Of a DNA stretch of 64,000 nt, positions 14,515 through 50,900 are shown one piece after another. The position numbers and the translations under genes are program-made. The stretch's first letter is position 1; each line of letters begins with the position of its first letter. Under the pieces are notes generated by a model, which saw only the letters and a list, made by a program, of their open reading frames with translations, was not told the origin of the DNA and made no database searches. The DNA is taken from the NCBI GenBank assembly GCA_964036045.1, contig OZ038378.1, positions 199,516,001 to 199,580,000 on the forward strand. The letters are read 5' to 3'. The DNA comes from Eutreptiella sp. 'Long Island Sound 2002'. Its lineage: Eukaryota; Protista; Euglenida.

Positions 14515-14655
14515 TTCCAATTCGTGCTTCTCAGCATCAATCTTCAGTAAAAAGATGTGTGTCCGGTTGGGGCCCTTCGTTTGCTGCCACCAATCATCAA
14601 GCGTCATGACGTCCACCAACTCGAACCCTTGATTGGCGCGATGGGGATCAGCCAC
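14515..14655 (-). CDS. FkbM-family methyltransferase exon 4
   Basis: ctcag|GTG...GAA|gtatct, 141 nt, phase 0/0. Reads VADPHRANQGFELVDVMTLDDWW...IFLLKIDAEKHELE. Confidence 0.9.
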
Positions 14656-15318
14656 CTGAGCACAAGCGCATGAACACTGATAAGAGAGAATGAAGGCAGT
14701 ACGGCGGGGGGGCAGGGTATTTGGGGTCTGAGAGAAAGGCAAGCCCAGGAACGAAGAAACTCTCCACTTTGTATGTGATTGCACTCACACACATTGTCAA
14801 AACTCTTGCACCTCCGAATTCTTATGCAGTGCCCCTTGTTTGTGCTGCACCGCCTGCAATGCAATTAAATTCTTCGCCAACTTTGCCGGCGCTGCGAGAG
14901 TCTGCGGAATCCGAGGCGTAATCTGAGGGCGCGGTGGTGGTGGAGGCTTGAACGGCCCGACCCGAGTGGCCCAAGGCAGGAGAGGAAGGTGTGAGAGGGC
15001 AGCAGTGGGGTACAGGGGAATGGGATGAGAGCGAGGCACGAGAAGGGAGAAGGGAGGAAGGAGGAGGCTGCAGAAGATGCCCAAAAGAGGAAGGGGTGGA
15101 CGGGTGGGCAATAAGGAGTGTAGGACTGAGATGGCAGTGGAGACAGGCAGGCAAGGAAGGCAGGAGAAGAGGGTGCAGACGAAAATGTAAGCGGAATGCA
15201 CAAGACGAGGGTAGAGTCGAAGGCATGAGAGGGAGGCAGGAAAGGTAGACTGATGAGGTATCACATCACATCTGGAACTTGGGCAAAAATAGGCGCGCAT
15301 GGGCATGGCAGCACATAC

Positions 15319-29800: not shown

Positions 29801-30244
29801 TCAGTGCCCGGCAGCCACATAATCCCGGACGGCGGGCACAAAGGCATTACGGGTGCGATGGAAATACCAGCCCCGCAGCCCCGGGTACAAGCCGGATCTG
29901 CGGACCCAGTTCTGATGCGCAGTGTTGTGGCCCCCCGTCCGGGGCTCGACGCTGTAGATGGGCAGGTGGCCCCCAGCATTCCACTTCGCTGCAATGGCCA
30001 GGGTTGGGTTGCCCCAGTTGTCCGACGTCACAATACCCGCGGCGCGGCTCATTAGGAAAAACTCCTGCAAGAGTCGTACGGTATGGCCGTTGTGCCGGTA
30101 CTCGGGCAATCGCTGAGCGCGCTGCTGTGCCTGCTCCGCGGTGAAGGGATGCAGCGGTGCAGAGAGCTCTGTGAGCAGCACACGATAGGCGTCGCGCTGG
30201 CTGGCGTCGTCGGACAGAACGATCCAAGGCAATTTTCGCAGGCC
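29801..30244 (-). CDS. Methyltransferase-fucosyltransferase fusion gene, last exon (fucosyltransferase C-terminal part)
   Basis: attag|GGC, 444 nt to the stop. Reads GLRKLPWIVLSDD...LLQEFFLMSRAAGIVTS, resembling the xxxTDD and Dxxxls motifs of GDP-fucose transferases. Confidence 0.85.
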   Translation of the reverse strand, partial: GLRKLPWIVLSDDASQRDAYRVLLTELSAPLHPFTAEQAQQRAQRLPEYRHNGHTVRLLQEFFLMSRAAGIVTSDNWGNPTLAIAAKWNAGGHLPIYSVEPRTGGHNTAHQNWVRRSGLYPGLRGWYFHRTRNAFVPAVRDYVAAGH

Positions 30245-31690
30245 CTAATTGCAGGAGCGATCAAGACAGAGCGCCATTTCGTTATGATGCAAGAGCAGTC
30301 CCATAGCCGACACTACTCCCCATCGTCTACGGGTTTCACTTCCTTTTGAACCGGCAAATTTTCCGATGGTGAGCCATGCAGGCAGAGATTATTCTGCATC
30401 ACACCACTCCTCAATGCAGGGGGGAGAAGGAGGCAGGTGAGCGACAATGGCTTGCTGTCCCGCACATGACATGGCACAGCATCACACTCAGCACGGTACT
30501 CAGCATGGCGCCTTACATGTGCACATAGCATGGCACAGAGCATGGCATACAATAGCACGGTGCATAGCACTGCAAATTGCGTGGCGCATGGTATGACACG
30601 AGTTGTGGCACAGAACATGACACCGAGCATGGCACCAGGTGTACCTCTGGAATCCACCAACGCACTGGGACGAAAACTGCTTGGTCACCGTTGCCCAGCA
30701 TACTATGCTGAAAAGAGCAATTTCTCGCGGCTGCTGTTCCAACCAAGCGCCGAAACTCGGGTTGTACAGAGCCAGCTAAACGTCAGAGCAAGTATATTAG
30801 AGTGTTTAACTTCCTGGTACTCATCCTCCCATGCAATAGACTCCTCATGTGCCGTTGAATCATGCTGGTGTCCAAACTGTCCATGCAGGCCACAGGGGGG
30901 TGCTCAGTTCAGTTTCGGCCCCCAACCCCAACAGCGTGGGCAGGGGGGTCCATGGGGGGGGGGGGGAGTTAAACAAATTTTCAGCTTGGCATTTTTGAAC
31001 CCTGTTTCATTCTGAGCATTTTGAACATACACAAGTGGGATAAAATATCCTTTTACTGTTTACCACCAATGGAAAATGGTAGGGCATTCTGACGGAACCA
31101 GGCCAGGCAATACAAGGGCCAAAAGCATACTTGCAGCTGCACTTGGTTATGATAGCACAATCCTTACAGTGTGTTAGGGTATGCCTTGCCATTTCCTCCA
31201 TCCTCGCCCTAATGTCCTTAGCGCATGCCTTAGTGGCTGCGTAACCTCCGCCGTCTCAGGGAGAACTGCAATGGCCAAATAACCCTTGCCGTCTCAGGGA
31301 AAAGTGGAATGGCTATGCAACCCCTGCTATCTCAGGGAAAACTGAAAATATCCATGTAACCAGTGCATTCACATTACTCATATTTGACTTGTCCATTCAA
31401 AACTGAGCATTTTGGGTGTAAACACAATGAGGAAAATTTTCGGTGCCCCATCCAACAAGGCCAAAATAATTTTCTGGGCACCGTTGGCGCCCGAGACAGT
31501 TGTTCCTTGTTGTTCACCATTGGTGTGTCTGAGGGTGGGGGCGGCGGGGCTGGGGGGAGGGGGGATGGTTGGGGCCCAGCCCAACACGTAAGCCCCCACC
31601 ACCCGTGACGCAGGCCCCCTCAGGCACATTTGTACTTGGTGCTTCAACAAGGGCCTCTAGGGTTCGGCTTCAACCTTGCATATCATCAAG

Positions 31691-32694
31691 TACCTCAACA
31701 AAGTGCACTGGCGAACCATAATTTGCCATAATTTGTGCTGAGCCAAATGCGATGCTACGTGCCATGCTACGTGACTTGCAGTGTGCCATCGCAAAATGTG
31801 TGTTTCATAGAATGTGCTATGGTATTTTCTGGGTGTTTTGATGGATATCGCAGAGAAAGCTTTCGGGACCCTGCAGAAGTCTTATGGTGTGCATGCCATG
31901 TCTAGTGTAATTCATGGTGGTCCCACTGATGCGTGCTATTCTGCTACAGTGTTGCCGAAATGCTTCTGGGTGCCTTGGCCACCAACCCGAGCGGTTATTG
32001 TTGGGTTTGCACGGTTCACTTTTGCCATTGCACCCTCGTTGGGTGAGCAAAGTAGCCGTGTATCATAGTGTCTATGGTGGGGCCACCAAGAGGGGCAGAC
32101 AGGCTCCATACAGCAATGTCTGTGCAGACAGCAGACACGCTTGGCTTGGGCGAGCCCTGACTAGATGCCTTTTCCCCGCAGAATCACCACTGTCTGCGGT
32201 TGCACTAAAAGCTTTTGCAACCAGGGGAGTTGGTCTGGAAAAGAATGGGGGACGTTACATAGCGGGCATGCTGTGGGCACGGACAAGCATCAAAGGGTGT
32301 CGAGGGCAGGGCAAGAGCTTGGTGGGGACTACCAACTGTGCACTGCAGGGTGACCCGTATGCAGTGGTGAGAGGCCATTGGCACACCTCGTGGATGAAAT
32401 CTATGAGCCTCCGAGGAGAGCATGTAGTATGAGTTGCAATGGGATACCATGGCTTAGAATACAACATAGCATACACAGCATGGTGAATAGGATCACACAT
32501 ACCTCAACAAAGTGCACTGGCGAACCATCATTTGCCATAATTTGTGTTGAGCCAAATGCGATGCTACGTGCCATGCTACGTGGCTTGCAGTGTGTCATCA
32601 CAAAATGCGTGTTCCATAGAATGTGCTATGGTATTTTCTGGGTGTTTTGATGGATATCGCAGAGAAAGCTTTCGGGACCCTGCAGAAGTCTTAT
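31691..32694. repeat. 195-bp direct repeat pair (31691-31885 and 32500-32694) in an intron
   Basis: Near-identical from TACCTCAACAAAGTGCACTGG to CTGCAGAAGTCTTAT. Ends are not TG..CA. Confidence 0.9.
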
Positions 32695-32766
32695 CATGCC
32701 CTCTGGCGTGGACTGTCCAGCACTGAAAATGGAGCAGACTCGGCACTGATGCAGGAAAGTTGAGAC

Positions 32767-32965
32767 CTGATTCGTTTGGATGACCAGATCTCGCAGTGCA
32801 GTGTGCAGTTCCTCCTTCGCTGCATCAGTGAGTTGCCCCTTGTCACCGCGTCGTAAATATAGCACAAGGTACGAATAAGCAGCCGGCAGTCCAAGATCTA
32901 CTTTGGGCCTGAAGGAGGTTGCCACATGTTCGGCTGTCTTCAGCCAGGCCGCAGGATCCACACAC
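32767..32965 (-). CDS. Fusion gene exon 5 (GDP-fucose-binding motif)
   Basis: cacag|G...CAG|gtctca, 199 nt. Reads CVDPAAWLKTAEHVATSFRP...YLVLYLRRGDKG. Confidence 0.9.
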
Positions 32966-33009
32966 CTGTGAATGGGTGCGGTCATTTACACGGATGGGCA
33001 CAGACTTGG

Positions 33010-33300
33010 TGCAGTGTGGTGTGGTGTGGTATGGTGTGCCGAAAGCGCTGTTACGAAATGGCAATGGCCAGGATGCCTTGCATACGGGTATTGCAAAACG
33101 GGGGTGTAGTGTGGTGTGGTATGGTGTGGCATGGTGTGGTGTGGTGTGGTGTGGTGTGGTGTGGTGTGGTGTGGTGTGGTGTGGTGTGGTGTGGTATAGT
33201 GTGGTGTGGTGTGGTGTGCCGAAGGCGCTGTTACCAAATGGTATTGGCTGGGATGTCTTGCACACGGTAAAATGCAAAATGGGAGTGCTGTGTGTAGTGT
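33010..33300. repeat. (GTGTG)n arrays alternating with a repeated spacer of about 65 bp
   Basis: Spacer CCGAA(A/G)GCGCTGTTAC(G/C)AAATGG...GGATG(C/T)CTTGCA(T/C)ACGG...TGCAAAA occurs at about 33040 and 33219. A related spacer lies at about 36235. Confidence 0.85.
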
Positions 33301-33364
33301 GCTGCGCACCTGAGGAGGGGGGCCAGAGCCCCTTTGCAAGTGTTGTCCTCAATTCAGGGCTGCC

Positions 33365-34250
33365 CTAGGGACCTGTTGCTCCGCCTATTGGTGTAGTTGA
33401 AGCTCCTGCAAAAGCCCACGCTATCGTGCCCCAGGACCCCGAGCGGACCTTGTGAGGCCGTCGAGTGCTTTGGCATGGGCCAGCCAGACCTTCTACGATT
33501 CCGCCAACACTTGTGAGATGAACGATGTCTCCATGTCGTTTGGCCCTACCGGCCCCATATGTGCCACCCACATGGACGCCGTCCTCAGAGCGCTTTGCTA
33601 GCACCATCATGGGCCACAATGTGCCGCTACTGGTCATCGTGAAGCAGCCAAGAGGCAGACCAAGGCCTCTTCCGTAGTTGGGTCCCCATCGGTGCCATAT
33701 TAAACCCGTGCAAGGATAGCCGCCTAATCTAGCAGCCATGTTCGTCGGGGCCAAGTGGCCGTGGTCCTGCAACTTCTCTGGGGGTAGGACGGTGTAAGGG
33801 CGGCCAACAGCTAGGTGAGATCCGTCCGCGGCTTCTCCTTGGTTGCTGCGCACACTGATGGCGGTGATCTGATGCAAGGGCGTAACCACGATGTTGATCG
33901 CGGCCCTCGGGGCTAGGCGTTCCACTCCTAGGGTGTGTGCATATAGGTGTGTATGCCATCTTTACAATGTCCGTTCTCTTGGTACGTGTGGAGGGCGCCT
34001 ACGGCAGACTCCGAGTCCCGCGCCACCTCGCGCACACCCTCTTGCGGCGCTAGCTGACAGGCGCAAAGAAGCAGCAGGGTCATGACCTCGACGGCTTGAG
34101 AGGTTCCCACCCTTGGTGCTGTATTGCCCGAGCGTACCCTTGTATGCAAGCGCCATGGCCATTCCCGCCCGGGTGGTGCCTGCGTCAGTTGCTATGAACG
34201 CCCCACGGATTGTGGACAGTGGCAGCAAGTCATGGAAGCACACTCATGGC
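33365..34250 (-). mobile_element. LINE remnant with RNase H domain (copy 1)
   Basis: Frameshifted segments FIATDAGTTRAGMAMALAY, TSQAVEVMTLLL, EVARDSESAVGAL and VTPLHQITAISVRSNQGEAAD give the D-E-D-D order of RNase HI. Confidence 0.7.
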
Positions 34251-35639
34251 TCTATACGGGGTTGCAAATAATGGGGTGTCGCTGTGGGGGCGCGGTGGGG
34301 GTATAGTGTGGTGTGGACCCCAAAATATTCCCACATGTGTGTCCTTGGGGCGGGGTCCCACACCCCTACATATGGCCCTCCATGCAGGGCATGGAGGGCA
34401 ATATACAAGGGCCCCTTGTGGGGGCGCCCCGGGCGCTTGTGGGTTAGGCACTAGGCCGGGTACCTCAAAAGTGCCACCGCATCCGTTCAGAGCTCTATCC
34501 ATGGCTCGGGCGGCTAGGCAACCATGATGGTAAGCACAGTGTGCTGCGCATGGGACACCCACTCCCAATATTGTTGTCTCTGCGGTGCATGATGCCATAC
34601 CATTGTGGGGCCCTCCATGCCGCAAGCTGTTGTTGCGTGGCTACTCGCAGGTGGGGGGGGGGGGGGGTGCTCCACCTGCACTTGGATGTTCAAAATACTC
34701 ACCCACAGCCTATGCAGGCGGGTGTCGCTTCGGAGGTCGCCTCAAGGCTGTTTGCATACCGGGAGTGCCATAGTCCATCCTAGTGTGGCCATGACATCCT
34801 CCATGGTCGTGGTGAGCTGGATCGCACAACTCTGTTGGCAGACAACCTGCTCCCGGGTGGTCTTGGCTTCACAGCCACCAATGATTGCCGTGGACTATCA
34901 GGGAATCATTTGGCCCGGCGCCCAATCCTTAGGGGCTCGCTGCCAGCGGGGAGTCGGCATGTCTAGCAGGGGTTGTGGGACCCCCCGATGGTGGTGGAGC
35001 CAAAGCCCGATGGCCTCCACCCTGCGCCCCCTGGGGACGTCCGCTCATGGGTCTTGCTGACTACTGAACCCCACTTCGTGCGTAGAAATTCCCCATGTGG
35101 CGATAGCCCAGCGCCACAGCCGCCGCATCGGCCGTTGGGGGCTGATGGACTTGAGTGACCGCTCCGTATTGGCGGTGGTACGTCGTCACCACCAAGTAGA
35201 TGTCTTGCTATGCCAGCCCCATCTCCGGGCGGGATTTGAGTACGAGGACGGGCCGTGGTGCCCTCACAACGGGCCGGGAGCCACATGGGCACACCCACTT
35301 TGTCGACGACCAGCTGCATAGTGTCTCACAGGTGAGGGTGGTGTCAGCGGTGGGGGTTGGTGTGGTGTGGTGTGGTGTGGTGGCCATCATGGCGCAAATA
35401 TGGGTCCAAATGCGGCCCCAACGCATGGCCCCGGATGTGGCAATGATGGTCCTCGAGGCCAAAGTCCCCACCAAACTCTGTGCCGCAACCTGTGTCTACC
35501 ACCCCACGGCTGCAATCCAGCACACTAATGACGCCCTCTTGCTGCGGTGCTAGAAACACATCCTGGGCACCTCCTACCATGCCCGCACTAAAGCGCTCTA
35601 GGGGCCCTACAAGGACGGCTGCCTAGGGCTCCACCGCTC

Positions 35640-36170
35640 GGAGCATTCACGGCGGTGGCAGTGGCCGGGGAATGGGTCCGGCAAGGTGCGTGGGCCAAGG
35701 ACCATTTTAGGCAAGCCCAGCAAACCGCCGTAGCGGAGCAACGCCCCCTAAGGAGGCATTTGCCCCGCGGTGCTCACCCCGGGACAATGGATCCACCACC
35801 GAAACTGCCCCCATCTATTGTGTACGCTACAAATGGTCACCGACTGGGTATGTGTATACCGGTGATGTATGCCATCCCCGTAGTGCCCACCTTTTTGGTA
35901 GGTTCGTAGGGCACCTGCGGCGGGATATGAGTCAAGCACCACCCGGTGGACGCCCTCCTGCTACGTTGGCCGGCGGACGCATAGCAGCATGGTCATGGCC
36001 TCCCCGTCTTGGGAGGTCCCCACTCCGGAGGGCACCCAGGTGTGGTATTCCCCCGGTGCGCTCTCGTACGCTAGCGCCATGACCATCCCTGCCGGGGTAG
36101 CACCAATATCGGTCGCCACGATGGCCCCACATATGGTTGCCAACGGCAGCACTTCGTGGAACCATATGCC
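35640..36170 (-). mobile_element. LINE remnant with RNase H domain (copy 2)
   Basis: IVATDIGATPAGMVMALAY, TSQDGEAMTMLL and VLDSYPAAGAL. Nucleotide similarity to 33950-34250. Confidence 0.7.
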
Positions 36171-38169
36171 TAGTGTGGTGTGGTGTGGTGTGTTGTGGTG
36201 TGGTGTGATTTGGTGTGGTGTGGTGTGTAGAGGCAAAGGCCGGGATGTCTAGCACACGAGAAAATGCAAAACAGGTGGGCCTAGAACCTTAACCTTAAGA
36301 CCAATGGGGGGTCTGCAATTCAGCGCCTGACGCCAACCCCCGCAGCGTGGGCGGGGGGGTCCCGGAGGGGGGGGGGGGGGGTCGAAAAATTTTCTCCATT
36401 TTGTGGGCATTTTTGAATTCCCCATTTCATTCTGAGCGTTTTGAATATACACAATTGGGGTGAAATTTGGTTTTACCACTCACAACAAATGAAAAACAGT
36501 ACCATATTCCAACATATGTACCTGTGAATCAGCAAAAGGCTTCCCGGTCAGCAAAAGAAGACACGTGGCACGGCATTCCCTAACTCATTGTGAGCATTTT
36601 GAATGTAAACAATGGGGGGGGGAATCAAGTGTTTTGCAAATTTTCTATGCTCAAAAAAATTTTCTGGGCGCCGCTAGCGCCCACGTTGCCAGTTCTAATC
36701 AAGTGCTGACTAGTATGGGTTGGGTGGTGCAGAGGGGAGGGGGGGGGGGGGGTTGGTGTCAGGCCTCACAGGTAAGCGCCCCCCCCCCCGTGCTTAAGCC
36801 TTACTAAGACTAACGGCAAACTTACTAACACTAAAGCCCTTTGTTCGGCAAGCAAGACAAGGGGTAGCTACACGGCTCTCCTATCTACCTCCTCTACTGA
36901 GGGCCGCCCTTGGCACTCCCTGCCATCCCGCTTGCTGATGGAGCCGCACCTCCCACGCTATCGTGCCTCAACGCACAGGCCTCAATGAGCACCATGGGCC
37001 GTGGACAAGGGTGTCTCCTGCACACCACCACCAGGGGGGGGGGGGGTCTCGGAAATCGGATATCCTGCTTAAAACCCCCCTAGAGCCAAATTTAAAAAGG
37101 GGGGGGTGGGGGGAATTTAAGGGGCGTTTTCGCTGCGCGGGGGTATTGTGTGCGGGAAGGACGCCCCGGCCCCCAAAATCTCCCCCCACAACCCCACACC
37201 AAATGAAATACATAGTGTCGGGCACCTCCAAGCAGTGGGGTATGCGGCTCACATGTGATCCGACAATTCGCACCGCCCCTACCAACATCTATGGTAGGGT
37301 TTCATCGGCTTGGGAATTTCCGGCCATGGGTACCAAAAACCTCGGGACAGTGGGTCTCCGAGGCGGTCATGGGGTTCAAAATACACCATGGGCTGGGAAT
37401 TGCAGCATGGGGGTTGACCCGCATCAAGGGTGGTCATGGGGTTGGGAATGCACCATGGGGTTAGAAATACACCATGGGGTGAGAATGCATCAAGGGGAGG
37501 GCATAAAAGAAGGAGTGTGTGTGTGACTATGCTGGCTGGCCGACGCAACTCGGGAGGCCCTTAAGGCTGTGGCAGGCTAGGCCCCCCTCCCAGCGCCATT
37601 GTGTGGGCCTTCTAGTCCTAGTGTGCATGCTACTAAAGGGGACGGAGAGGGAGAGCGAGGAGGTGTAGGGCGTGGAGGAGGTATCGGTTTGTGTCATGTG
37701 TGTGCGTGCAGCTCCGCCTACTTCTTGCACCCTAACATCTTCACCATGTGTCGCTTCTTAGCACTTTGCTTGGGAGTGGTGATGGGCCGCTTTGTGCCCT
37801 TGCAGGGCGCAGCTTTCTTTTCCGGGAGAACTTCCATGCCAGAAGAAGAGGTAGAAGAGGAAGAAGGTGAGGAAGAAGAGGAGCTATCACCATCTTCGGA
37901 ACATGCGGAACTCTCGTTGCCGTTGGTCGAATCCTGATCTCTTGAAGACCCAAATCCCGCGGAGCTTGCATGCTCCTCTGGTTTCCACTCCCAATCCGAG
38001 CAGGCAAGAGAGGCTTCAGAAGAAGATGCACCCTCATTGTCAACCGCCTGTGCCACCTTCAAAATGATCCTGGGGTTCGTCAACAGGGGGATTTTTTTTT
38101 GGATCGCCCCTTTTTTTCTCATCGGCCTGGCTAACCACAACCCATTCCGTCAAATCAACGGTGTATGGT

Positions 38170-38510
38170 GCCATGGTGGGTTGGCAACGTGCCAAGTGAG
38201 TTTTGATGTCAAAACCCACGGGGTGGCACTGCACCCGGGAATAGGACATTCACGGGGCATGTTTTCTTGTTTGCGCATGGCCACTGCGTGCTTCAATGGG
38301 ACCACACACGGGCATGTGCTACTAATTTTCTTGCCACAATACTTGTGGTGCACGTGCCTGTAGTGCCACAGGAACCGCAAGGTTCGGCCTCATCACGCAT
38401 CCTTGGGTCCGGTACCACCTCTCCCTTCTGCAAGTGCAATGCCACATGATTGCGCATCCTTGCCAAAGCAATGGCCACTCCACAAACAATTTGGCACCTG
38501 TGCCGTTTTC
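38170..38510 (-). pseudogene. Decayed Cys/His-cluster coding remnant, probably transposon-derived
   Basis: RCQIVC...RMRNHVALHL...EPCGSCG, then after a frameshift NMPRECPIPGC...W...WHV...H. Confidence 0.4.
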
Positions 38511-39349
38511 ACAAAGGCAGATAGGGTGCCCAACGAACAGAATGACCCAACGACCACCGGCATCCATTTGGGCATCCAAAAAAACCACATGCCCGTTCTG
38601 AAACTCACATCCCGCACCAAACCGTCCCGTCCACTGCAACAAGGTCGGATCACTTGTCATTGCGACAAAGGGCAAAAATTGACCTGTCACGGGGATGGAA
38701 TATCCTGTCGCAAGCCCCTCCTTGGTGATACCATAAACCCGTGCCCTGTGAACGGTGCACCATGAAAAACTAAATGTGCCCACAAAACACGTCCGTTGCG
38801 AGCCCCATATGAAGGTCACTAGTGCAAGAAAGATAGCCCCGACCGTTACTGCATCCTCATCAAAATTGCAATTGTCAGACAATGCAACATTGTTTACATT
38901 CGTGGTGGTTTGGCCAAACCGGGAAGTTTGTGCTGTAACCTAACCGCAGCCGATCGGTTGACGCATGTTCAACATTGCCGTTGAATTACTCATTGACAAG
39001 TTGTGTAATATGCACGGTGTCTCGGGGGTCCCCAATGCCAAGCGCGGGGAGAAAATCAGAATTGGCTGTCTCACCCCTACCTTCTCGGGGACCCACAAGT
39101 GGGTGGAATTGCTACGTCACCCCTGCGTTCTCGGGGGTCCCCAGCAAAGGGGACAAAATCAAAGTGGCTGCATTGGGGGCAAGGACAAAACTTTGGATGT
39201 GCAGCCCAAAAGAATATCACATCAATTTCGCAAAAATGGTGTGCCTGCGTCGAAAAACACCCTTAAAAAACCCCCACGGACCATTTTAAAAAACCGGGGG
39301 GTGTTTCCAACCACCCCCCCCCCCCGCGCTATCAGATTTCTGAGAAACC

Positions 39350-39660
39350 CAACCACCACCCTGCTGTGGCTCCTCCTATTCACTGTCTCACTGCTGTGGG
39401 CACTAAGCACTGGGGCTCCTTTTGCATACCACCGCCTTGGACGTGGCATTGGGTTGTGGGTCTCTCTCTGTACAACGCCGCACCGCAGGGGCAGTGGGCA
39501 GTGGGTATCCTACACTACGCTGCACTGCAGGGAGCAGTGGGCAGTGGGCCTCCTTCAATACACTGCTGCACTACAAAGGGTAGTGGGTAGTGGGTATCCT
39601 TCAGTACATTGCCGCACTGCACGGGGCAGTGGGCAGTGCACCTCCTTCGGTACGCTGTGT
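39350..39660. repeat. About 40-bp minisatellite (CACTGC...GGGGCAGTGGGCAGTGGG)
   Basis: The motif recurs at about 39490, 39530, 39580 and 39622. Confidence 0.75.
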
Positions 39661-40190
39661 GCCTCCTTCAAGGCGTGGGGGGGGGGGGGTTGTCGGGGTT
39701 GGACACCAACTACCCCCGCACCCAGTAACTGTTGGCCACAGGCCCCCTGGGGGGGTTTGGGGGCTGGGAAGGGGGTTGTGGGAGAGGCGATGGGGGAGGG
39801 GGGTCCAGGAGGGTCGGTTGAGGCGGGCGTCTAGATAGGGCAATTTGGGGGGGGGCATGCCCCCAAGGCCACCCATTGGTCAATCACAGACTCTTGTTAT
39901 CTCCCCTTGCCCTCCCTTTCTCCATACCATCACCCTAAACCTAACCCTAACCTTTGCAGCGAGCTGGTTCGGCCATGCTATCCCTCCCACACCTTTGCGT
40001 CAACAGCACCCCCATGTGCACCAACAGCGTGGCAACAGCCCGGGCATACCATCAGCACACACACCCTCTGTGTGCCAGCACACACAAAATCCCCTGTGCA
40101 CCGATGTGATGAAGCCTGTTGACTCCCTGGAACCCCGAACCATGCATTCAGAGCCCCGCTACAATTGTCCCGATATCATGAGGCACACAC

Positions 40191-40411
40191 CTTTGAGCAG
40201 CGCTGGTGGTGTACGTCGTGAACTTCTGAAAATGCATCAATAATCCAAAAGAGGTCTCCGGAATCAGATCCATCGAGTGCTTGGGCCCGGGCCATTTGTC
40301 AAATGGGGGCAAGACAAACTCATCAATACCAGTGATGGACTCGTACACTGCTTCTTCCACGAAATACAGTGCTGCGAAGCTCGGTCCGAGAGTTGTAAGC
40401 CTTTGAATGAC
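40191..40411 (-). CDS. Fusion gene exon 4
   Basis: ccaag|GTC...AAAG|gtgtgt, 221 nt. Phase 0 in and phase 2 out match both neighbouring exons. Reads VIQRLTTLGPSFAALYFVEE...TTSAAQR. Confidence 0.8.
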
Positions 40412-40639
40412 CTTGGAACCATGGACCACCATTCAGGGGCTGTGTCCCGCTGCCTCCCTCCACTGGCTTCAACAACACATGCTACTGCGGTTCTTGAACA
40501 GGCCTTGACGGTGACCATGTCTCTTCTTCTCTTCTCACCCGGGGCTGAAATACTCAGTCGTGGCATGTGCCTGGAAGCCCAATGAATCTTTGGGTGCCAC
40601 ATGCGGCGATGATGGGTTTCCGATGATTCAATTTCAGCT

Positions 40640-41340
40640 ACCACAGCGAGTTTCGAGCTGTTATGTTGAGTTTGCAGCTACCATGTTGAGTTTCCATGCA
40701 AAATGATACTTTTCTGCCTACCATGGCGAGTTTCCGGTCACCATCTTGTGTTTCAAGGTGTGTTTCACACGTGTTTCCAGGGACCATGTTGGTTTTGTGC
40801 TGACTTTCCAGCTGCCATGGTGCGTTTTCAGCCACCATGCTGGGTTGTCAGCCACCATTATAAGGTTCCAGCCACCATGATGAGTGTCCATTTCCCCTGG
40901 TGGGGTCCCAGCTACCATGCCCAGTTTCCAGCTACTATGCTGCGTTTCCAGCGACTATGTTGACTTTCCAGGTGCCATTCTGAGTTTTCAGCTGACATGG
41001 TACGCTTTCAGACAAAATGCTGGTCTTCAGCTGTCATGTTGAGTTTCCAGCGAGCATGATGAGTTTTCAGCTGCCATACTAGGTTTCCAACTTTCATATG
41101 GCTGTCCAGCACCCCTGCAAGTGTCCAGCTGCCGAGCTGAGACGGTTTCAGCTGTCGCAGCGAGGTTCAAGGTACCATATGAAATTTGCATGTGTGTTGC
41201 CATGTTGAGTTCCCGCCTACCAATGTGCGTTTCCAGGGGCAATGTATGCTTTCAGTGACCATGGGGGATTGCAGCAACCATGTGGAATTCCCCCCAGTGA
41301 TGGTGAGTTTCCAGGCACCATGATGACTTTTCAGCGACCA
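40640..41340. repeat. Degenerate tandem array, about 20-bp unit (CCATGTTGAGTTTCCAGCT-like)
   Basis: Many TTTCCAG / CCATG / GAGTT motifs in register. Confidence 0.8.
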
Positions 41341-41429
41341 CGGTGACTCTCCAACGTCTGGAGGGGGCGTAGTGAGTGTGTGGCTTCCGGTGTGGTGAGT
41401 TGGTTGTGGGGCTCCCAGAGCAGATGTAT

Positions 41430-41830
41430 GGACTTGTGCGTGTGGATCCCAGGTGAGGAAGGGATGTGGATCCCAGACTGGGGGGGGGGGGGGGCTGGGC
41501 GTGTGGGTCCACAAATTGAGGTCCGTGTGTGCATGCCGGACCAGGTGTATGGTGCTGAGTGTGTGGATCCGCGGACTTGGGTGTGTGGGTTCCGGACGAA
41601 ATGCATGGCGTTGAATGTGTGGACCCGAGTTACGTCTGGACTTGGTTGTGTAGGTCCGAGATTAGTTGTATGGAAGCGCGTGTGTGGCTCCTGTTGGGTG
41701 TATTGTGTGGGTCGCAGCTCCCAGATCAGGTGCAGGGAGATGGGTGTGTGCGTCCCGCATTAGGTGTATGGAGGTGCGCTACGTGGGTCCCATGCAGATT
41801 CGCTGCGTGGGTCCCGGACGAGGCGTATGC
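41430..41830. repeat. Degenerate tandem array (GTGTGTGG(A/G)TCC(C/G)G-like)
   Basis: GTGTGG(A/G)TCC motifs recur roughly every 25-30 bp. Confidence 0.75.
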
Positions 41831-42387
41831 ATCCGTACGGTGGCTGCTACTTGCACGTACTAGCGGAAATCAACACCGAACCCGGAACATACTCTGTGGT
41901 GCTTAATCCAAGTCCGGAGCCTCAGGGTTTGGGATTCTAGGGCTTTGGCAACTTCAGGTGGGTTGCCTCACTTCAGGGGGGGTCTGGGTAAGCCTGCATT
42001 TACCTAGGACACGATTTCACACCTTGGTTTTCCTCCTCACTGGTTGGTCAATCCCGGCTTCTGCCGTGCGGCGCTAACTTCAGGGGGGGTGCCTCACTTC
42101 GGGGGCGGGGGGGGGGGGCATTTTCCGGGTCAAAAAAAACTTGGGGGGGGGGCTTGTATTCGGCACCGCAGAGTAGCTGTGCAACCCGTGCCCCTCTTCC
42201 CCAGCTCTTCAAACACCCAAAGTGCCCCTACGTCCCAAGATCGGACCGAAACCCGGTGACATGATGCGGTGCACCGCAGGACGCTGCAGCAACAAAGCGT
42301 GGATTGCGAGTCCCTAACCCCAACTCAAGGGGCCATGGTCCCTAACCCCAACTCAAGGGGCCACGCAATTCAGAGGGGATCTCTCAC

Positions 42388-42981
42388 CTGCGTCCAGCTG
42401 CTTTGTGAAACCGTCCCCTCGTGATCCGAGCTGTCTCTCCAGCACCCGATGATGGGCCGCTGAAGGCTCTCCCCGAAGACCGCCAGCATCAGGTACTGCC
42501 CCAGACGGTTCCCAAGGCCGCCGTCTGGGAGGGCGATGGCCTTGATGGGACACCCAAGCGGGAGCTTCATGCGTCTCATCTCCGCGTCCGTGGGCAGGAA
42601 AGCGTAGCGTGCGGAGCAGATTGAGCTGGCGGGCACGAGACAGAGTGGTTCGGGCGGGAGCAAATCCTGCAGGTCTTCCTGCAGGAAATGGATTGTCCTG
42701 AGGCCGTGCGCTCGGAACGAGGGGTCACAGGCCTGAGAGTACATGAATTCCGTCAAGGCGTGCTCTGGCGAGACCAGAGCGTATTCCACAAATACATTGG
42801 GGCCGTGCCTGTGGTGGTCCCGGGCGACGGCAAGATACCCACATCGCAACATCGCTTGAATGAACTTGCGGTGCCAATAGCAGTCGGGGTCGTACAGCAC
42901 AAAATTCAAATGGCGAACTGCCACGTTGCAGCGGTGCGTCAGGACGTTCAGCATGTCGCGCTCTGCCCCTTTGACGTCCAC
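42388..42981 (-). CDS. Fusion gene exon 3 (end of methyltransferase, linker, start of fucosyltransferase)
   Basis: caag|GTG...CAG|gtgaga, 594 nt, open. Begins VDVKGAERDML (completing DLLK|VD) and contains ALPDGGLGNRLGQYLMLAVFG in the same exon. Confidence 0.9.
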
Positions 42982-43589
42982 CTTGAAGCAGGCCGAGGCC
43001 AGTAGCGTCAGCAGGGCCATGGAAAGACTATGGGGGAGTCAGTTATGCAGCGGTCGGTGGCATTGGGGGCCGACTTTTGAATCACTAAGGCAGGGGGGGC
43101 AGTGATATACAACTGCACGCGTCTTGAGAATCTGAAGTGCTTGAGAGACCCCAACAGCACTTCAAAAATGATGAGCAACGCCTGAATTCACCACGTGAAG
43201 TGCTTGTGGACAAAAACCATGTTGCTGAGTTTGCGGCGTGCGCGCTGTTGTACTCAGTTTGGAATGTTGCTGTAGCAATCAGGATCAGGACAGTTTTGCG
43301 GACACCGACATTAGTGGCGTATTTCGCGGTACTTGGTGGGTGGATCCGCAGCAAGGGCTCGGATGACGTAGCGGTTCATCGAATGGTCAGGGTGTATCAG
43401 GGGTGACACGGTGGCTTACTGGTAACACCATGTGTAGTTGGCCCTATTAACGAAAAGTACAGTTGAAGGCCTAATGCTGATGTTGTTTCACCGGATCCGT
43501 GCCTCATGAAAGAGGGGTGGTGGGGGATTGACGCTAATGATGGGCACCAGGGGGGGGGGGGGGGTTGGTGCTATCGAGGCCCAACGGGG

Positions 43590-43955
43590 GGGGGGGGCGG
43601 TGGCACATGGGCATGGCGGTCTTTACTCTGTAGACACTGTCTGCCCGAATTAGACGCGGTCTGCTAATTATGGACACTGCCGGCACGTTGTAGATGCGAA
43701 GTGACAGTATTTGGGAAGGGGGCCAAAGGCCCCCTTCCCCAAAAAACGGTCTGCTAAGGTCGTTTACCCATGCACATGGGCATGGCGGTATGTAGCCTGT
43801 AGACACTCTCTGCCCCAATTAGACGATGTCTGCTGATTGTAGACACTGTTGGCACGTCGTAGACGCGAAGTGACAATATTTGGGAAATGGGCCAAAGGCC
43901 CACTTCCCAAAACATCGGTCCGCTTAGGTCGTTTACCCATGCACATGGGCATGTC
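43590..43955. repeat. Tandem duplication, about 170-bp unit
   Basis: GCACATGGGCATG recurs at about 43603, 43772 and 43941. GTAGACACT..CTGCCC..ATTAGACG recurs twice. Confidence 0.85.
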
Positions 43956-44799
43956 TCTCGAGCGGCCGAAGCGAGGGAGGAAAGCACACAGACGCGGGCG
44001 GGGGGGGGGGGGGGGTCAAGTGCATTTTGGTGGGTGTGGCGAATGGGGAGGTTTGGCGCTGACAAGGCGCACAGGGGGGGTGCACTAACGAGGCACGCAA
44101 ATCCAGCAAAACGGTGTATAAACATAGGAGGCAATTGAGATGGTTCTGGCAGAGCCTGCACGTCACTTCAGCTGAAGGTAAAAAAACAGAGCATAATGAT
44201 GAACTCTGAGGGACACGACTTTCAGTGGTTGGCTGATGCACATGGCAGTCAGTCTGGGGTATGGGGTCGCCCCAATATCCATCCAATTCCAGGGAAATTC
44301 TACATATCACAATGGCTCATTGGCCTCCCTCGTCAAATTTGGCTGGGCTGACGATATGTTGGAGCGGAACGCAGCGGCAGATGAACTGAATCAACTTGCG
44401 AACAGTTTTCAGCCACGCTCAAAATCTCAATAATATCAAACACATGGTGCCATGCTGCACAGTTTTGAGAAACAATCCTGATCCTTGTGTTAAAACGACT
44501 GCCTTAGTGCCGAAGAGCCCACATACACATTGCTGAGACTGCATACTAATGACACCAATGACCCGCTGCATGACAGAACTCTGCCTTGCCCCTGACCCCT
44601 CAGGTCTCCTCCCTTTCGTCGCTGATTCACAGCCTCGAATGACCCACTGTTCTCACTCAACCCCCACAACGATTACCTCATTATCTCTCGCAACACACCA
44701 ACTGCCTGCCACGGCATTCCTTGTGGCCACCTTGCGCTGTTTACAGGGCTACGCCGCCTGTCCCCTCACCTTGGACCACTGATTCGCTAAGGCGCATAC

Positions 44800-45112
44800 C
44801 TTCAGCAGGTCTAAGGTCCGGTTGGCATGGCCAATGCTTTGGATTACTTCTTCCAGTTTGACAGTCCGGGGGATGGAAGGCCCATCCGCCACATTACTGT
44901 GGACGTTGTGGAAGTTAGAGCGGGCCCCCAATTGGTGCAAGGAGGCATTGAGGGCGTCAACGTTCAGCGGTGCATGACGGGGTTCGATGTCTGCAGGACC
45001 CGTGACATTGAAAAGATGCATTTCAGCATCTGGCAGCCCATCGCGGACGCCTTGCTCCCAGTAGACCTCCGAAAGAGGACCCATCGAGTACACCAGCCTT
45101 TTCACACCATTT
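44800..45112 (-). CDS. Fusion gene exon 2 (METTL24/Methyltransf_22-like core)
   Basis: gcag|A...AAG|gtatgc, 313 nt. Reads NGVKRLVYSMGPLSEVYWEQGVRDGLPDAEMHLFN...VKLEEVIQSIGHANRTLDLLK. Confidence 0.9.
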
Positions 45113-47733
45113 CTGCATCATGCGGTGAGGGGCACGGGTGATTTTCATGACGTAAGACTAAGACAGAGTGCGCCCTTGCTATGGTGGGCCCAAATTCGAC
45201 GTGTGCAGTACAGCGCAGTGCAAGTGTTTTGGGTTTGGGACGAGTTGCTTGGTGTTGCCCGGAGTAGGACCGGGAGGTGAGTTGGGATGATGAACGACCA
45301 TCCCCCATTGGTCTGGAAGCCATAACCTCCATCCACAAGAACACCTGGACGGAGCGCTTCCGGAGGGTGCGGGGGAGGTGAAGTACGAGAGAAAGTTGCG
45401 GGCTGCAAGCTGGGGACGGGGGAGGCTCCTGCCACAGCCCTTGTGGTCTGGCGGGTGAATGTGCTTGGTGTGCCGCCTGGATTGGGAAAGGGCGGATCGG
45501 TTCAAGCAATGGATTGCTGCACTTGGGTCCCCATTCGAACGATCCGTGGAGATGAAAGTGGGATGCATTACATCGGGAATGCATTCATCGTGTGGACAGG
45601 CCTCGCCTCTTTGGGGACCGGCAGTAGGCCGTGTGGTTGGCTTGGTGATTCAACGCCTCATCCGCCCAATTTCAACCCCAAAGCCAAAGCGGGGGACCCA
45701 ATTGCCTCACCAGACAGTCCGTGACATAACACCACTGACGAGATACCAATCGACCAACGTCGCCTGATCAGTAACCGCTGGTCACCGACGGCGGGTTGTA
45801 ATCAACCAGACCGCATATGAGCACGGCGACCGGTTCCCTTGGCCAGAGCTCCACTTAAGGGAGGGGGGGGTGGTCGGGGGGGGGGGGGGTCCGAGGGGGT
45901 TTTGGAGGGGGGGATCACCCCCTAACCCCCCCGCACAGGTCCCGAAGAAGCAATTTTCGGGCCAGCCCAGAAAGACGTTTACCCCAGAGCCACGAGGTGC
46001 CGTACTGTGTTGCACAATGGGGTTTCCAAGCCTTTTTCGAACATCTGTAAAGGCAAAAAGACCGCAGCTGTAGTCACAGCCTGCAGTAGCATCTCTCCTC
46101 ACTAGCAGCATACACAGGGTACAAGTAGCCAGACCGCTTATGCCGTGGAAAATTGCGCCAAAGGAGAAGAACAAAATTTGGCCCAACCACTTAAGGGGGG
46201 GGGGGGCTGGTCTGGAACCCCCCACCCCACCCCACCCCCGTACTGGTGCTGAGTTGTGAAGTGGAACTCTGCCCTTGGTCTCGCCAAGAAACAAGGTCTC
46301 ACAGGATCTTACCAGCCCAGGGGGGGCGACTACAACTGGTCCTGATGCGACACCCCCCAAGCTATCTGTCAAAACTTGCGGGGGGGGGGGGCAGTTGGGG
46401 CAGGGGGGGGGGGTTCGGCGGGAGGGTGGGGGGGGGGGGGTATTGGCAGCTTGGCCGGGGCGGGGGGGCTGCGCGCAACCCACTACTATCACATGCATAC
46501 CTCAAGGGGGTGTCTGGGGGCATGGGGGTATAGAGGTATGTATGCGATAATAGCGCTATCTTGTCTTTGCCAGGAAGAAAGTCTTAAGCGTCTTGAGGAC
46601 TAAAAGCATAGTACCCCTCTCAACTAAGCATGGGACAAAAAATTTGGCCCCCACACCGCTATCATTCAAAACTCGGGGGGGGGGGGGGGTTCGCATACAA
46701 GGACCGGGCCCGGCCGCCCCCCCGGGCTTACCACAGCAACAGTACGTGCACCTCGCAAGCTCGCTTTGAGGCCACCAACCTCGCTGCCCACCATGTGGCT
46801 GGAGTCACAGCGACTGTCTCAGGCGACGGGGAAGCGTATGTGGCGAAGAGGGTGGAGAGTACCGGTGGTCAAGGCTCATGTGAGGGTTTGGGACGTCAAA
46901 ATCCGTGGGTCTTCAAGCCAGGATGGGCAATCAGACATTGGCGTGCTCGGACATGATTATGTTCTGTCCGATCGTTTCCTCAATGATGGTAAGAAAATTG
47001 GTAGGGTCACGGCCTTCGGACCGGCTGGAATTGGTGATTGATAGAGACGACCCTGGCAATTGAAGTGGGTTCACAGGTATTCACGCTGCATGTAAAATGC
47101 TCGGCATCCCACTCAATTGCCGTCAACGGAATAGTGCAATGCAGGCCCCCTGCATTTGACTGCTTGGCACTAGCCAACGAGAAAAATGCCCGTCGCAGAG
47201 GCACAACATGCTCCAACAACATTCAGCCTCCCCGTGAGGTCTGCAAAGGCTTGACAAGGGCTCTGGGGAAACCAAAGCTGCAGGATGTGGAGCAATGGTC
47301 ATGCGCTGCCAAGCGTTTGAGGGGTGTCCCATTCGATGGGGAGGATGGGGGGGGGGGGCGGTGGATTCAATGGAGGAAGAGTGCGCAGGACCATTGGGGT
47401 CTTTAGGCACCAGGGTAGCGTTGTATTGTAGCCGGAGGAGTTGCCCACCCCATTCCCTTGCCACACGCCATTACCTTCGGAGAAGGGTGCCGCCGTTGAA
47501 GAAATGGATGTGCCGCATGACATGGGGTATGCTATGACCCGAAAGAAAACAAGATTTTGTCCCAAGCTTGGGCTACATGTTGCTTGTTCCGTTAATATTG
47601 GAGGTTGGATACAATTTGTATGGTGTGTTGTGGGCTTGATACGGCCTCTACAGCAACCTCTACTTTGGAGGTACCAAGGAGCGGGCACTCTTACAACATG
47701 GCAACTTCCCAAAGGGAAGGGGTAGAAAGTGAC

Positions 47734-47949
47734 CTTAGGGCCGTGAGCCCACAAACCCACATGCCAATCTCCTTGTATCTCCCATAGGCCACATGCGGAA
47801 TCCTTTGAAGGTCTTCGCAATGCCACTTCGGCCACCATTTATCATAGGACTCCGCTCCCAACTGGCAGGTACGACGGTTGTGCGCTTTCCAAACCCTTTC
47901 GTATTGTGCAAGCTTGTGTGCCCACGCCTCGTGGCATGGGGCAGGAACA
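47734..47949 (-). CDS. Fusion gene, first identifiable exon (METTL24-like N-terminal part)
   Basis: cctag|T...AG|gtcact, 216 nt. Reads WPKWHCEDLQRIPHVAYGRYKEIGMWVCGLTALR (the C...RiG...wvC pattern). AG|A joins exon 2. Confidence 0.85.
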
Positions 47950-50900
47950 CTAGGAGCTAGCAAGAAGGCACACACAGTGACAAGGCAGGGCAAATAACAA
48001 CAAGAGACTTATGTTCACTACTTTTCATTCCAATTTGAAATTCCTCAACATCATGAAAGAACACCCGCACTTATTGGGTTGACCCCCTTCCATCTCTGGC
48101 CTGCTCAACGACCCCACGGGGATCTTTTTGTCCACGGGGATCTTTTTGTCCCGGTAATTTTCACCAACCCACCCACTCCACTGACAAGAGGATGCACAGC
48201 CCCAACAAAGCTTGATCATATCAAGTGACCACTAGACCCTTGACCCACCTGGGAGATGCAAGTGGTGATGGCTAACAGAAAACAAAAGGCCAAAAGCCCA
48301 AAACCCAAGAATAAACATACGCCCTCGCCCCCACATGTGACTATGTAGTAGAGGCGGTAATTCATTCATGCACAATTGAAATGAAAAGTAATCTCAAATT
48401 GGTGACACCATGAGCCACATACAAGCTTTTGTTCTACCTTGTCCAAAACCCAACGGGCGCCGGGAAGAGGCAGGCTAGATTGGGCGGTTGGCTGATGGGC
48501 AATAGAAGCACAACACGAGGCAACAAAAACTGCTCACAAAGGCAGCATTCAAGACTAAGGGGTATACAGTGGCAGGGCAGATGTCTTGCTCTATGCATCT
48601 ACCAATCACTGCCTTTCGTTGTTGCCCATGCAACACACTCATGCTATGAGGGTGCCCTAGATGCGTGGGGGACACGGGGGAGGGATGAGGGGGGCGCACG
48701 GAGGGTATGGAATTGGCCGTTTTCAAGGGACAAAGATTTGCAACTATTTTGGGGTGTTTGGCATCCTTCAATACCACACAACATAGCACTTTTGGGGGGT
48801 GTTTGGCATCGCTTATGCCCTCCCAAGCCCTCCTATCCTTCAATGCCACACAAAACAGCACAAGATGGTGGCTTGAAGAGGCACAACCAGTAATTGTGTA
48901 ACCTCGATGGTCATCATTCTTCAAAAATATTGCAGAGCATCGTAAGCATATGAAATAAACCATTTCCAACATATGCTCTTCAAAAAGAGCATATCATGTA
49001 CTATGTGGCGCTGTGTGGCACAAACACAAAGCAAGACAAGGTCTATAGCAGCCGGCTAGAGGATCAACAAGAGGAGGAGGACCCCTCCCCCCCTCTATGG
49101 TCGGTTTCGCTGAAAGTAACCATTTGACAGGCTGATGCCGTCATGACAATGAACTATATACCTCAGATCCTGTGGAAGCGAACAAGGTGCGTGTTGATCA
49201 TGCCAAGCAGCGAAAGACTAAGGTTCCATGCCTCCAACCACTTGTGCTTACAAGGAGCCAACAAGCCATTGCCAATGCTACTATTTAGTGCAAGAGACAA
49301 TCGTGATATGTCTTTCCATCATTGTTTCACACTTGTAGGGACGGATGGAGGGAGGGTGGATCCGAGGGATCGAGGGAGGGAGTGTATGGGTTATGCCATT
49401 GCAAGGCGGTCGCAGGCGGTGGGCTCCCCCAAAGAACAGCCCTATCCTTGGAAACTCTCACCTATAATTCCAAAGAGTCCTTGTGATAATCACCGTCAGG
49501 TTTGCCATCCCTTTGGAGATACTTTGATGAATATTGTGTGGCCCCAAAATTACGGGGATGATAAATATTGTGTGCCCCAAACTACGGGAAAGTCGGCGGG
49601 TGCGTTTATTGGTTTGCTGGCTATCCTTGTTGTCGGCGGTGCCATGCCTTGCGGCTTTCAAGGGGGCGGGGAACGCCATGGATGCATCATCATCATGAAA
49701 TCTTGAGAGCACACTCCCGGGTCCAACACACGATGCACTTAACTATGTGGTGGCGAGCCGCAGCAAGCCATGGCTGGACGGCCAGCTAGCTGGCTCAGCT
49801 AGGTGAAGCCCCCCACCCACCCCACCCTAGTTCCACGGCTCCCAAGTATGCACCCCAGCGCCACAGCTCCCAAGTATGCAAGTTACTGATTGCAAGCTGA
49901 GTGTTGCTCTCAATCCCTAATAAGGAATGCGTAAGCGCAAAGTACCTCCATCCATCAAAGGATGGAGATACAAGATTTGTACATACACGCGGCCGCCTGT
50001 CCGTGCATTTGTCGTGGGCTTGCCGAATAATGTGATGTTTGATGATGAGGCGATGGGACCGCTTGCTACCCTTGAGATAATTTTTGCACGCGTCTAGCCA
50101 TGCCAAGCAACACATACACTCCCTCTACCCTCCCGCGATGCATTCATTCCTTCCTCCCTACAAGCCATGTGCTGACATTCATAGATGGATCACGATTGTC
50201 TCTTGCACTGTCTCTTGCATTTGGCTGGATGAATTGAACCTTGCACGCTCAACACGCGCATTATTGGCTTCCATTGGATCTGAGGTACAGCTACATTTAC
50301 CTCACCGTCGGATGCCACAATGGTGTCCTCCACATCGTTGCTTGGCGAAGCGCTTGAGCTATAGCTTGAGGTCTTGGGTGCCTTTGCTTTCTCCTTGATA
50401 GGAGGGTTGCGGCGCCAAGGACCCACCAGCTGCTATGCAAATGGAGTGTTACTAAATTAATGCGCACCTTCATGCGTTAAAACAATTTTTTCACCCTTGC
50501 CTCACCATGTCCATGCAAAGGACGCTTTGTTGATTTGGGAGCAAGAACTCCAAGTTGGCATCAATCCTTTGGTCCTACATTGATGACCTATTTCAGTTTA
50601 GGAAGGCGGGCACCTTGCACTGGTCGCTGTGCAACAAGTCGGCCATCACGGCGCCTTTGATTCTTTTGGCGTTGCATCGAAAAGGCCCTCGCTATGAAAC
50701 GGAAGTGAAACATCTCTACTTACACGTGCAATGGCAAGCATGTCGAAGAGCAAAAATCGAGTGGTGGCTAACAATGCCATGGGAGCAAATTCGACCACTC
50801 ATGAGGCATCGGCCGAAACACAAAGGCAACACGGATGCAAGCATCACATAGCACATGCATCGAGCGGTATGCAAAGAAGGTCCACATACAAAATGTACCC

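Follow-up and report, generated by a model that had tools for sequence, protein, structure and literature searches.

Does a single gene in the euglenid Eutreptiella sp. 'Long Island Sound 2002' join a methyltransferase to a glycosyltransferase and, if so, could both parts of the product still act on sugars? The question is raised by a stretch of 64,000 nucleotides (nt), referred to here as the window (positions 199,516,001 to 199,580,000 of chromosome C1, contig OZ038378.1, in the 2.28-Gb assembly GCA_964036045.1). Here an initial annotation, made from the letters alone, had drawn a methyltransferase-fucosyltransferase fusion gene over six exons of the minus strand and had suggested that one enzyme may transfer fucose and methylate it or its acceptor. 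We found that the locus is an expressed multi-exon gene whose product, about 660 residues long, has two domains. The reading that we favor, with somewhat better than even confidence, is that the window gene specifies a GT-B glycosyltransferase of the fucosyltransferase type joined to an eroded methyltransferase and that its product would add a sugar without methylating it. The window exons were analyzed singly, and an intronless paralog on chromosome C17 (L002) served as a proxy for the whole protein.

All six exons lie where they had been drawn, with AG before each and GT after exons 1 to 5. The five junctions are in phase, and the reading frame runs through about 660 codons without a stop or frameshift and closes at the stop codon at 29801 to 29803. 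The exons are 216, 313, 594, 221, 199, and 444 nt long, with frame offsets of 1, 1, 0, 0, 1, and 0. Exon 1 as drawn (47734 to 47949) is open in offset 1, has no in-frame Met, and encodes the N-terminal part of a Methyltransf_22-like domain (W.PKWHCED, MWVCG), to which the N termini of paralogs L003, L031, and L037 are homologous. Exon 2 (44800 to 45112) carries the methyltransferase core, with VYSMG as motif I, LDLLK, and FNVT where FDPT is expected. The two domains meet inside exon 3 (42388 to 42981), as had been claimed: its first part (42724 to 42981) encodes the C-terminal third of the methyltransferase domain in an eroded form (VDVKGAE, NFVLYD), its middle (42607 to 42723) is an inter-domain linker with Pro and Cys, recognized by alignment with L002 and the Euglena mutabilis-like sequence P0004, and its last part (42388 to 42606) begins the GT-B domain (LPLGCPIK, GGLGNRLG) by family alignment. 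Exon 4 (40191 to 40411), identified by tblastn with L002 and by RNA contig coverage, encodes the GT-B N-lobe with a DLIPE motif. Exon 5 (32767 to 32965) supplies the donor-binding motif YLVLYLRRGDK and is 47.5% identical to L002 by tblastn, and exon 6 (29801 to 30244) encodes the GT-B C-lobe (WIVLSDD, LLQEFFLMSRAAG, GNPTLAIAAKWNAGG) and the stop codon. The motifs on which the fusion had first been recognized (wvCG, VYSxG, and lDlLKvD in one half; GGLGN, RRGDK, and SDD in the other) are all present.

To positions 40100 to 45200 of the window we aligned RNA contigs taken from three metatranscriptome studies of estuaries. Two of them (X1 record 1 and X3 record 15) join 40409 directly to 42386, and a third (X2 record 10) joins 42979 to 44798, in each case with 0 mismatches; these joints are introns 3 and 2 of the annotated model, with an offset of two bases (GT) whose placement is ambiguous. 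Another contig, the fourth, departs from the genome at 40184, that is, at the exon 4 donor plus 7 bases (GTGTGTG) common to the start of exon 5. RNA depth was zero in the non-repeat intron bins, while a DNA run (X4) covered the whole stretch. Since RNA contigs bridge exons 2 and 3 as well as exons 3 and 4, the exon that carries the fusion is transcribed and spliced to both of its neighbors. The drawn splicing is thus confirmed at two of the five junctions. No copy of the spliced full-length product was found in the protein collection.

The same architecture exists elsewhere in the genome without introns. A paralog search with exon 3 recovered a 604-amino-acid (aa) open reading frame (ORF) that carries both halves (L002:643-2457:-). 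When L002 was compared with the window by tblastn, five colinear matches of 36 to 48% identity corresponded to exons 2 to 6, with no segment absent. The two differ in length only at the exon 4/5 junction, by about 8 residues, and the loop concerned varies among family members.

The N-terminal half is a Methyltransf_22/FkbM-type methyltransferase domain, as had been proposed. Exon 2 alone matched Pfam Methyltransf_22 (PF13383) with an E-value of 2.1e-5 (24.7 bits, above the cut-off of 22.4), and L002 matched PF13383 at 1.6e-15, PF05050 (Methyltransf_21, FkbM) at 1.1e-7, and TIGR01444 at 4.6e-4. In a PF13383 scan of the genome itself, the window scored 28.7 bits and L002 scored 80 bits. The two halves of L002 were folded separately. 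The AF2 model of the methyltransferase half had a predicted template modeling score (pTM) of 0.74 and at least 500 PDB matches at E<=1e-3; nearly all of the approximately 40 listed were S-adenosylmethionine (SAM)-dependent methyltransferases. As modeled on this paralog, the N-terminal domain has a class I (Rossmann-like) SAM-methyltransferase fold. Word-index protein searches with this half or with the full 604-aa L002 found nothing, and when exon 3, exon 6, L002, or the methyltransferase half of L002 was used as a single-sequence query against the PDB, the only matches were chance ones (designed ankyrin repeat proteins, glutathione S-transferase, RecJ).

The window copy of this domain is no longer typical of its family. 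In an alignment with the other Methyltransf_22 loci of the genome, it retains VYSxG and LDLLKVD and departs at four conserved positions, with FDPT changed to FNVT, DxEGxE to DVKGAE, and E(L/V)H to VLY (D to N, E to K, E to V, and H to Y). All three signatures are kept in L002, L031, L032, L036, and L039; L038 keeps FDPT and ELH and has SVDEAE where DxEGxE is expected, and L037 keeps FDPT in an open frame that stops before the other two. No methyltransferase Pfam model matched the first 98 residues of exon 3 at E<=1; in L002, by contrast, the corresponding 98 aa matched Methyltransf_21 at 4.1e-5. In the closest paralog, on chromosome C12, and in P0004, the same domain is eroded further. In class I methyltransferases, an acidic residue after strand 2 binds the ribose of SAM. 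Because this residue and the conserved signatures have been lost, the methyltransferase domain of the window gene, judged by conservation, is probably inactive.

The C-terminal half is a new sequence family in the fucosyltransferase-type GT-B group. No Pfam or NCBIfam model matched it in any exon or paralog, and a Pfam scan at E<=0.01 assigned no glycosyltransferase or methyltransferase domain to any of 51 relatives. When 1.84 billion representative proteins were scored with a profile built from the Euglena copies, only 60 reached E<=1e-3, led by this genome's own ORFs and a cluster of Euglena mutabilis-like transcripts. The family is known from this genome, from Euglena-like transcripts, and from metagenome contigs. 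Two contigs of distant relatives have informative neighbor genes (TIMELESS, kinetoplastid-type RESC6, presenilin, and an ion channel) and look eukaryotic.

With its relatives as the alignment, the C-terminal half of L002 was modeled by AF2 with a predicted local distance difference test score (pLDDT) of 91.6 and a pTM of 0.90. Foldseek placed NodZ, AtFUT1, FUT8, and CePOFUT2 on top (E-values of 6e-4 to 1.3e-3), and its top nine matches were all fucosyltransferases. An exhaustive VIA search gave Z scores of 11.9 for AtFUT1, 11.5 for NodZ, 11.2 for POFUT2, 10.7 for POFUT1, and 10.6 for FUT8. When the family profile was compared with PDB sequences, 9 of the 11 matches at E<=10 were GDP-fucose fucosyltransferases, and the family sequences LHvRrGD and lvvSD were aligned to IHLRIGSD and YIATDS of POFUT1. 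The initial annotation had called this half fucosyltransferase-like; its best fold and profile matches are indeed GDP-fucose fucosyltransferases, although the GT9 family ties with them in the fold search (see below).

The window gene keeps every residue that is highly conserved in the family: G-x-G-N-R, P-E, R-R-G-D-K, S-D, (D/E)-F-F, and A-A-G. Of 53 family members, 52 share the first Arg of RRGDK (R175). YLRRGDK and LSDD in the window fit the Arg of fucosyltransferase motif I (HxRxGD) and the (S/T)D motif, respectively; L002 itself has CLDD where SD(D) is expected. In FUT8, the beta-phosphate of GDP is bound by Arg365, while Lys369 and Glu373 have catalytic roles (PMC8433944). The glycosyltransferase of the window gene is predicted to be active, probably as an enzyme in which the first Arg of (H/Y)xRRGDK would bind the beta-phosphate of a GDP-sugar. 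GDP-fucose is the most likely donor; fucose is present on the surface of Euglena, which also has the sugar nucleotide that goes with it (PMC5745450). The domain would move the sugar, with inversion, onto a glycan or protein acceptor, and by analogy with the paralogs that have signal peptides, the reaction would take place in the secretory pathway. The methyltransferase domain of the window gene, having lost the ribose-binding Asp, DxEGxE, and ExH, would be a noncatalytic module, perhaps structural or acceptor binding.

Several points weigh against this reading, and they concern the methyltransferase, the donor, and the 5' end in turn. With respect to the methyltransferase, Asn can still hydrogen-bond ribose, and the putative loss of SAM binding is read from conservation. 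We weighed the alternative that both domains are active in the window copy, with transfer of fucose followed by O-methylation of the fucose or its acceptor, in effect a fused NodZ and NoeI route. The D-to-N change is conservative, motif I and the domain as a whole are recognizable, with exon 2 above the Pfam cut-off, at least three genomic loci retain the fusion, and NodZ/NoeI and the chlorovirus protein A064R (see below) demonstrate that such chemistry occurs naturally. However, four conserved positions are altered together, the C-terminal third of the domain matches no model in the window as it does in L002, and the stronger decay in the C12 paralog and P0004 suggests relaxed constraint on catalysis. 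We consider this alternative rather unlikely, and the idea of one enzyme that both transfers and methylates fucose is doubtful for the window copy. Since its methyltransferase is eroded at four conserved positions, a bifunctional role suits the C17 paralog better; L002, with an intact domain, would be the better candidate for adding fucose and then O-methylating it.

A second alternative, somewhat less probable still, is that the C-terminal half is a GT-B enzyme with another donor, such as a heptosyltransferase resembling GT9 or an enzyme that transfers rhamnose or a different deoxyhexose; the name fucosyltransferase would then be wrong. Superfamily relatives can use other donors. The GT9 heptosyltransferase WaaC had a Z score of 12.0, the joint top of the VIA search, with other GT9 chains at 9.5 to 10.6, and an Atlas cluster labeled Glyco_transf_9 gave a TM-score of 0.55. 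The Foldseek TM-scores to fucosyltransferases were modest (0.41 to 0.55), the PDB profile E-values were individually weak (0.017 to 1.1), and the fold and motif work was done on L002, which is 46% identical to the window protein. Moreover, none of the Pfam models Glyco_transf_11, NodZ, O-FucT, and XG_FTase matched the exons, L002, L004, or L014 at E<=1, so that membership in GT11, GT23/NodZ, GT37, or O-FucT, with which the half had initially been compared, was not upheld. Against a GT9-like enzyme, the family profile selected POFUT1, POFUT2, AtFUT4, NodZ, and FUT8 from PDB sequences and no GT9 chain, Glyco_transf_9 (PF01075) had no match in the exons, paralogs, or relatives, the (H/Y)xRRGDK and SD(D) motifs correspond to fucosyltransferase motifs, and the leading Foldseek matches were fucosyltransferases only. 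We retain a fucosyltransferase-type glycosyltransferase with an eroded methyltransferase as the preferred reading.

The remaining point concerns the 5' end. Upstream of exon 1, its frame stays open to a stop at 48011 and contains no ATG; the reading there is hydrophobic (...CLVTVCAFLLAPS), and this stretch resembles the signal peptides of L003, L031, and L037, each of which stands directly before the corresponding Cys-x-x-x-Trp region. Position 47949 is one among several possible 5' borders of exon 1. Reading of the three frames together with the GT and AG positions gave a candidate start (48009 to 48028, minus strand) with an ATG at 48028. This ATG may be followed by a 59-nt GT..AG intron (48008 to 47950) that is in phase and ends at the annotated acceptor, in which case the product would have no signal peptide. 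Alternatively, it may open a signal-like ORF (MKSSEHKSLVVICPALSLCV...) in another frame, over a (TG)4 run, with a stop at 47959 to 47957, or there may be an upstream mini-exon spliced at the AG at 48009 to 48008. Because the frame upstream of exon 1, read to 48011, yielded no start codon and no signal peptide, the topology of the protein is unproven and a 5' defect is possible. That the window gene is a decaying transcribed paralog, deprived of its start or signal peptide as well as of methyltransferase activity and yielding no functional protein, would fit the missing in-frame ATG, the signal-like ORF in a different frame, and the eroded motifs, but it is quite improbable for a gene that has kept its long frame intact through six exons, retains all of the strongly conserved glycosyltransferase residues, is spliced and detected in three independent metatranscriptomes, and could obtain a start from a mini-exon or the in-phase 59-nt intron.

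The paralogs place the window gene within a series. The fusion is present at three or more loci in the genome: the window gene, with an eroded methyltransferase; a gene at 45.02 Mb of C12, with a more eroded methyltransferase and an N-terminal hydrophobic anchor; and L002 at 24.09 Mb of C17 (24.086 Mb), intronless and with an intact methyltransferase. The C12 gene is the closest paralog of the window gene, with 55% identity in exon 6. Other copies have the glycosyltransferase without the methyltransferase, and the glycosyltransferase-only copies carry signal peptides: one lies on C24, and a partial one lies at 0.17 Mb of C12. A signal peptide, the glycosyltransferase, and a PAN domain are combined on C8 (L004:211-1812:-, 53.262 Mb), where the PAN/apple domain (PAN_1, 3.9e-6) is inserted near the C terminus of the glycosyltransferase. 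In a tree of the exon 6 region, all Euglena copies fell in one supported clade (96/88); no order of fusion and loss emerged from this tree. No spliced-leader relic was found beside the intronless L002 or in the window, and a putative retrogene origin of L002 is, with no such relic upstream, unproven. Partial near-identical duplicates of L002 (L010 and L012; 94 to 95% identity over 74 to 114 aa) lie 1 kb and 45 kb away from it.

The combination of domains can be set beside several known systems. NodZ and FUT8 (GT23), AtFUT1 (GT37), and POFUT1 and POFUT2 (GT65 and GT68) share with the C-terminal half the two-lobe GT-B fold and, at the fucosyltransferase motif positions, the N-terminal GxGN loop, (H/Y)xRRGDK, and SD(D). 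Unlike them, the Euglena copies belong to no sequence model, are only 9 to 14% identical to them in structural alignment, have Tyr in place of His, and carry a fused N-terminal methyltransferase. The N-terminal half resembles Methyltransf_22 (PF13383, METTL24-like) and FkbM (PF05050, TIGR01444) proteins in W.CG, VYSxG, and LDLLKVD as well as in the PF13383 match of exon 2, and it differs from them in being fused to a glycosyltransferase and, in the window, in lacking the FDPT Asp, the DxEGxE Glu, and the ExH pair.

NoeI is an FkbM-family enzyme. In rhizobia, NodZ and then NoeI place methyl-fucose on Nod factors (PMC4881576), a route that likewise pairs a NodZ-type fucosyltransferase with methylation of the fucosyl group; there, however, the two steps are encoded by separate bacterial genes, as opposed to one eukaryotic polypeptide here. 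The A064R protein of chlorovirus PBCV-1 consists of two rhamnosyltransferases and a methyltransferase, and it has been shown biochemically that O-2 of the rhamnose added by domain 2 is methylated (PMC9614988). The likeness is one of architecture: sugar transfer and a methyltransferase are joined in one polypeptide, but in A064R the methyltransferase is at the C terminus, the donors are UDP-rhamnose, and the protein is viral and cytoplasmic. The initial annotation knew of no characterized protein with this architecture. This statement does not hold for glycosyltransferase-methyltransferase fusions in general, a concept already established in a chlorovirus, while for Euglena a literature search found no paper on such an architecture.

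By language-model features, the ESM Atlas clusters nearest to the L002 fusion that bear a name are labeled [quoted passage not shown] with a score of 0.86; a score below 0.9 is an unconfirmed lead only. These clusters (Bacteria; Nucleocytoviricota) have Methyltransf_21, and a fifth of their members also have Glyco_transf_11, which suggests, as a lead, that GT11-FkbM fusions exist in bacteria and giant viruses. They differ from the present family in having a bona fide GT11 domain, and no characterization of them was found in the literature.

To our knowledge, the surface glycans of Euglena, which contain fucose, are almost uncharacterized, and no enzyme that builds them is known. The locus and its paralogs define a family of sugar transferases that is absent from current family libraries. 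On a broader and tentative interpretation, which we regard as possible though by no means the expected outcome, the C-terminal half represents a new glycosyltransferase family inside the fucosyltransferase superfamily, perhaps centered on euglenozoans and with the rank of a CAZy family, that in Euglena was fused to an FkbM-type methyltransferase for the one-step addition of O-methyl-fucose or methylated deoxyhexose caps. If true, this would be the first cellular eukaryotic enzyme of its kind, with paralogs at different stages of losing one activity. The series of intact fusion, eroded fusions, glycosyltransferase-only, and glycosyltransferase-PAN forms is a natural experiment on the rise and decay of bifunctional glycan-modifying enzymes, and the paralogs are concrete candidates for eukaryotic glycan O-methyltransferases, a poorly known class.

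More than a dozen Methyltransf_22 loci occur in the genome, and those numbered L027 to L038 had no fused glycosyltransferase within the stretches fetched. In the window itself, an exon-like frame at 14482 to 14784 (minus strand; ...VDVMTLDDWW...IFLLKIDAEKHELEV...) matched Methyltransf_21 below the cut-off (E-value of 1.7e-3, 18.9 bits). On this strand it follows the fusion gene at a distance of about 15 kb downstream, and tblastn and a profile of the Methyltransf_22 domain gave nothing further around it. A gene of about 936 aa at 7.318 Mb of C25 (L039:3240-6050:+) has further copies at 7.355 and 7.363 Mb, making three in tandem. Besides a signal peptide, its protein contains a complete Methyltransf_22 domain (173.6 bits) and another domain, of FkbM type (65.6 bits); the C-terminal third is unassigned. 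From these features the protein is predicted to be a secretory double methyltransferase.

The introns of the window gene had been described as filled with transposons, which is borne out only in part. High-copy repeats are present in them, but none of ten intron ORFs had a transposon protein domain; Pfam transposon domains were likewise absent from ten downstream ORFs. A dispersed repeat of approximately 2.3 kb in intron 4 (37025 to 39355) had more than 11,000 first-look candidates, and its scored copies, on many chromosomes, were 75 to 93% identical (the long ones mostly 84 to 90%). Directly after exon 3, intron 3 contains a single copy of a satellite unit of about 46 nt (42289 to 42335; ...GAGTCCCTAACCCCAACTCAAGGGGCCAC...CGCAACAAAGCGTGGATT), over which the depth of DNA run X4 reached about 2 million compared to about 10 for unique sequence. 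Many reads jump back by 44 to 48 nt, which shows that at other places in the genome this unit forms a tandem satellite of very high abundance; the three RNA runs are rich in it as well. Repeat bins of high depth span 41468 to 41638, 41981 to 42493, and 43520 to 44203.

The 24-nt spliced-leader sequence of E. gracilis had 5,458 copies in the genome compared to 0 for a reversed control, which marks the genome as Euglena gracilis-type. A dinoflagellate origin, considered at first, was rejected on this ground; the dinoflagellate spliced-leader (DinoSL) motif was absent from the loci examined for it. Over the listed part of chromosome C1, the spliced-leader copies were scattered on both strands and were not confined to arrays. 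Finally, a 169-nt tandem repeat of 2.1 copies in intron 2 (43603 to 43953), with a DNA depth of 8,000- to 23,000-fold, is another high-copy element.

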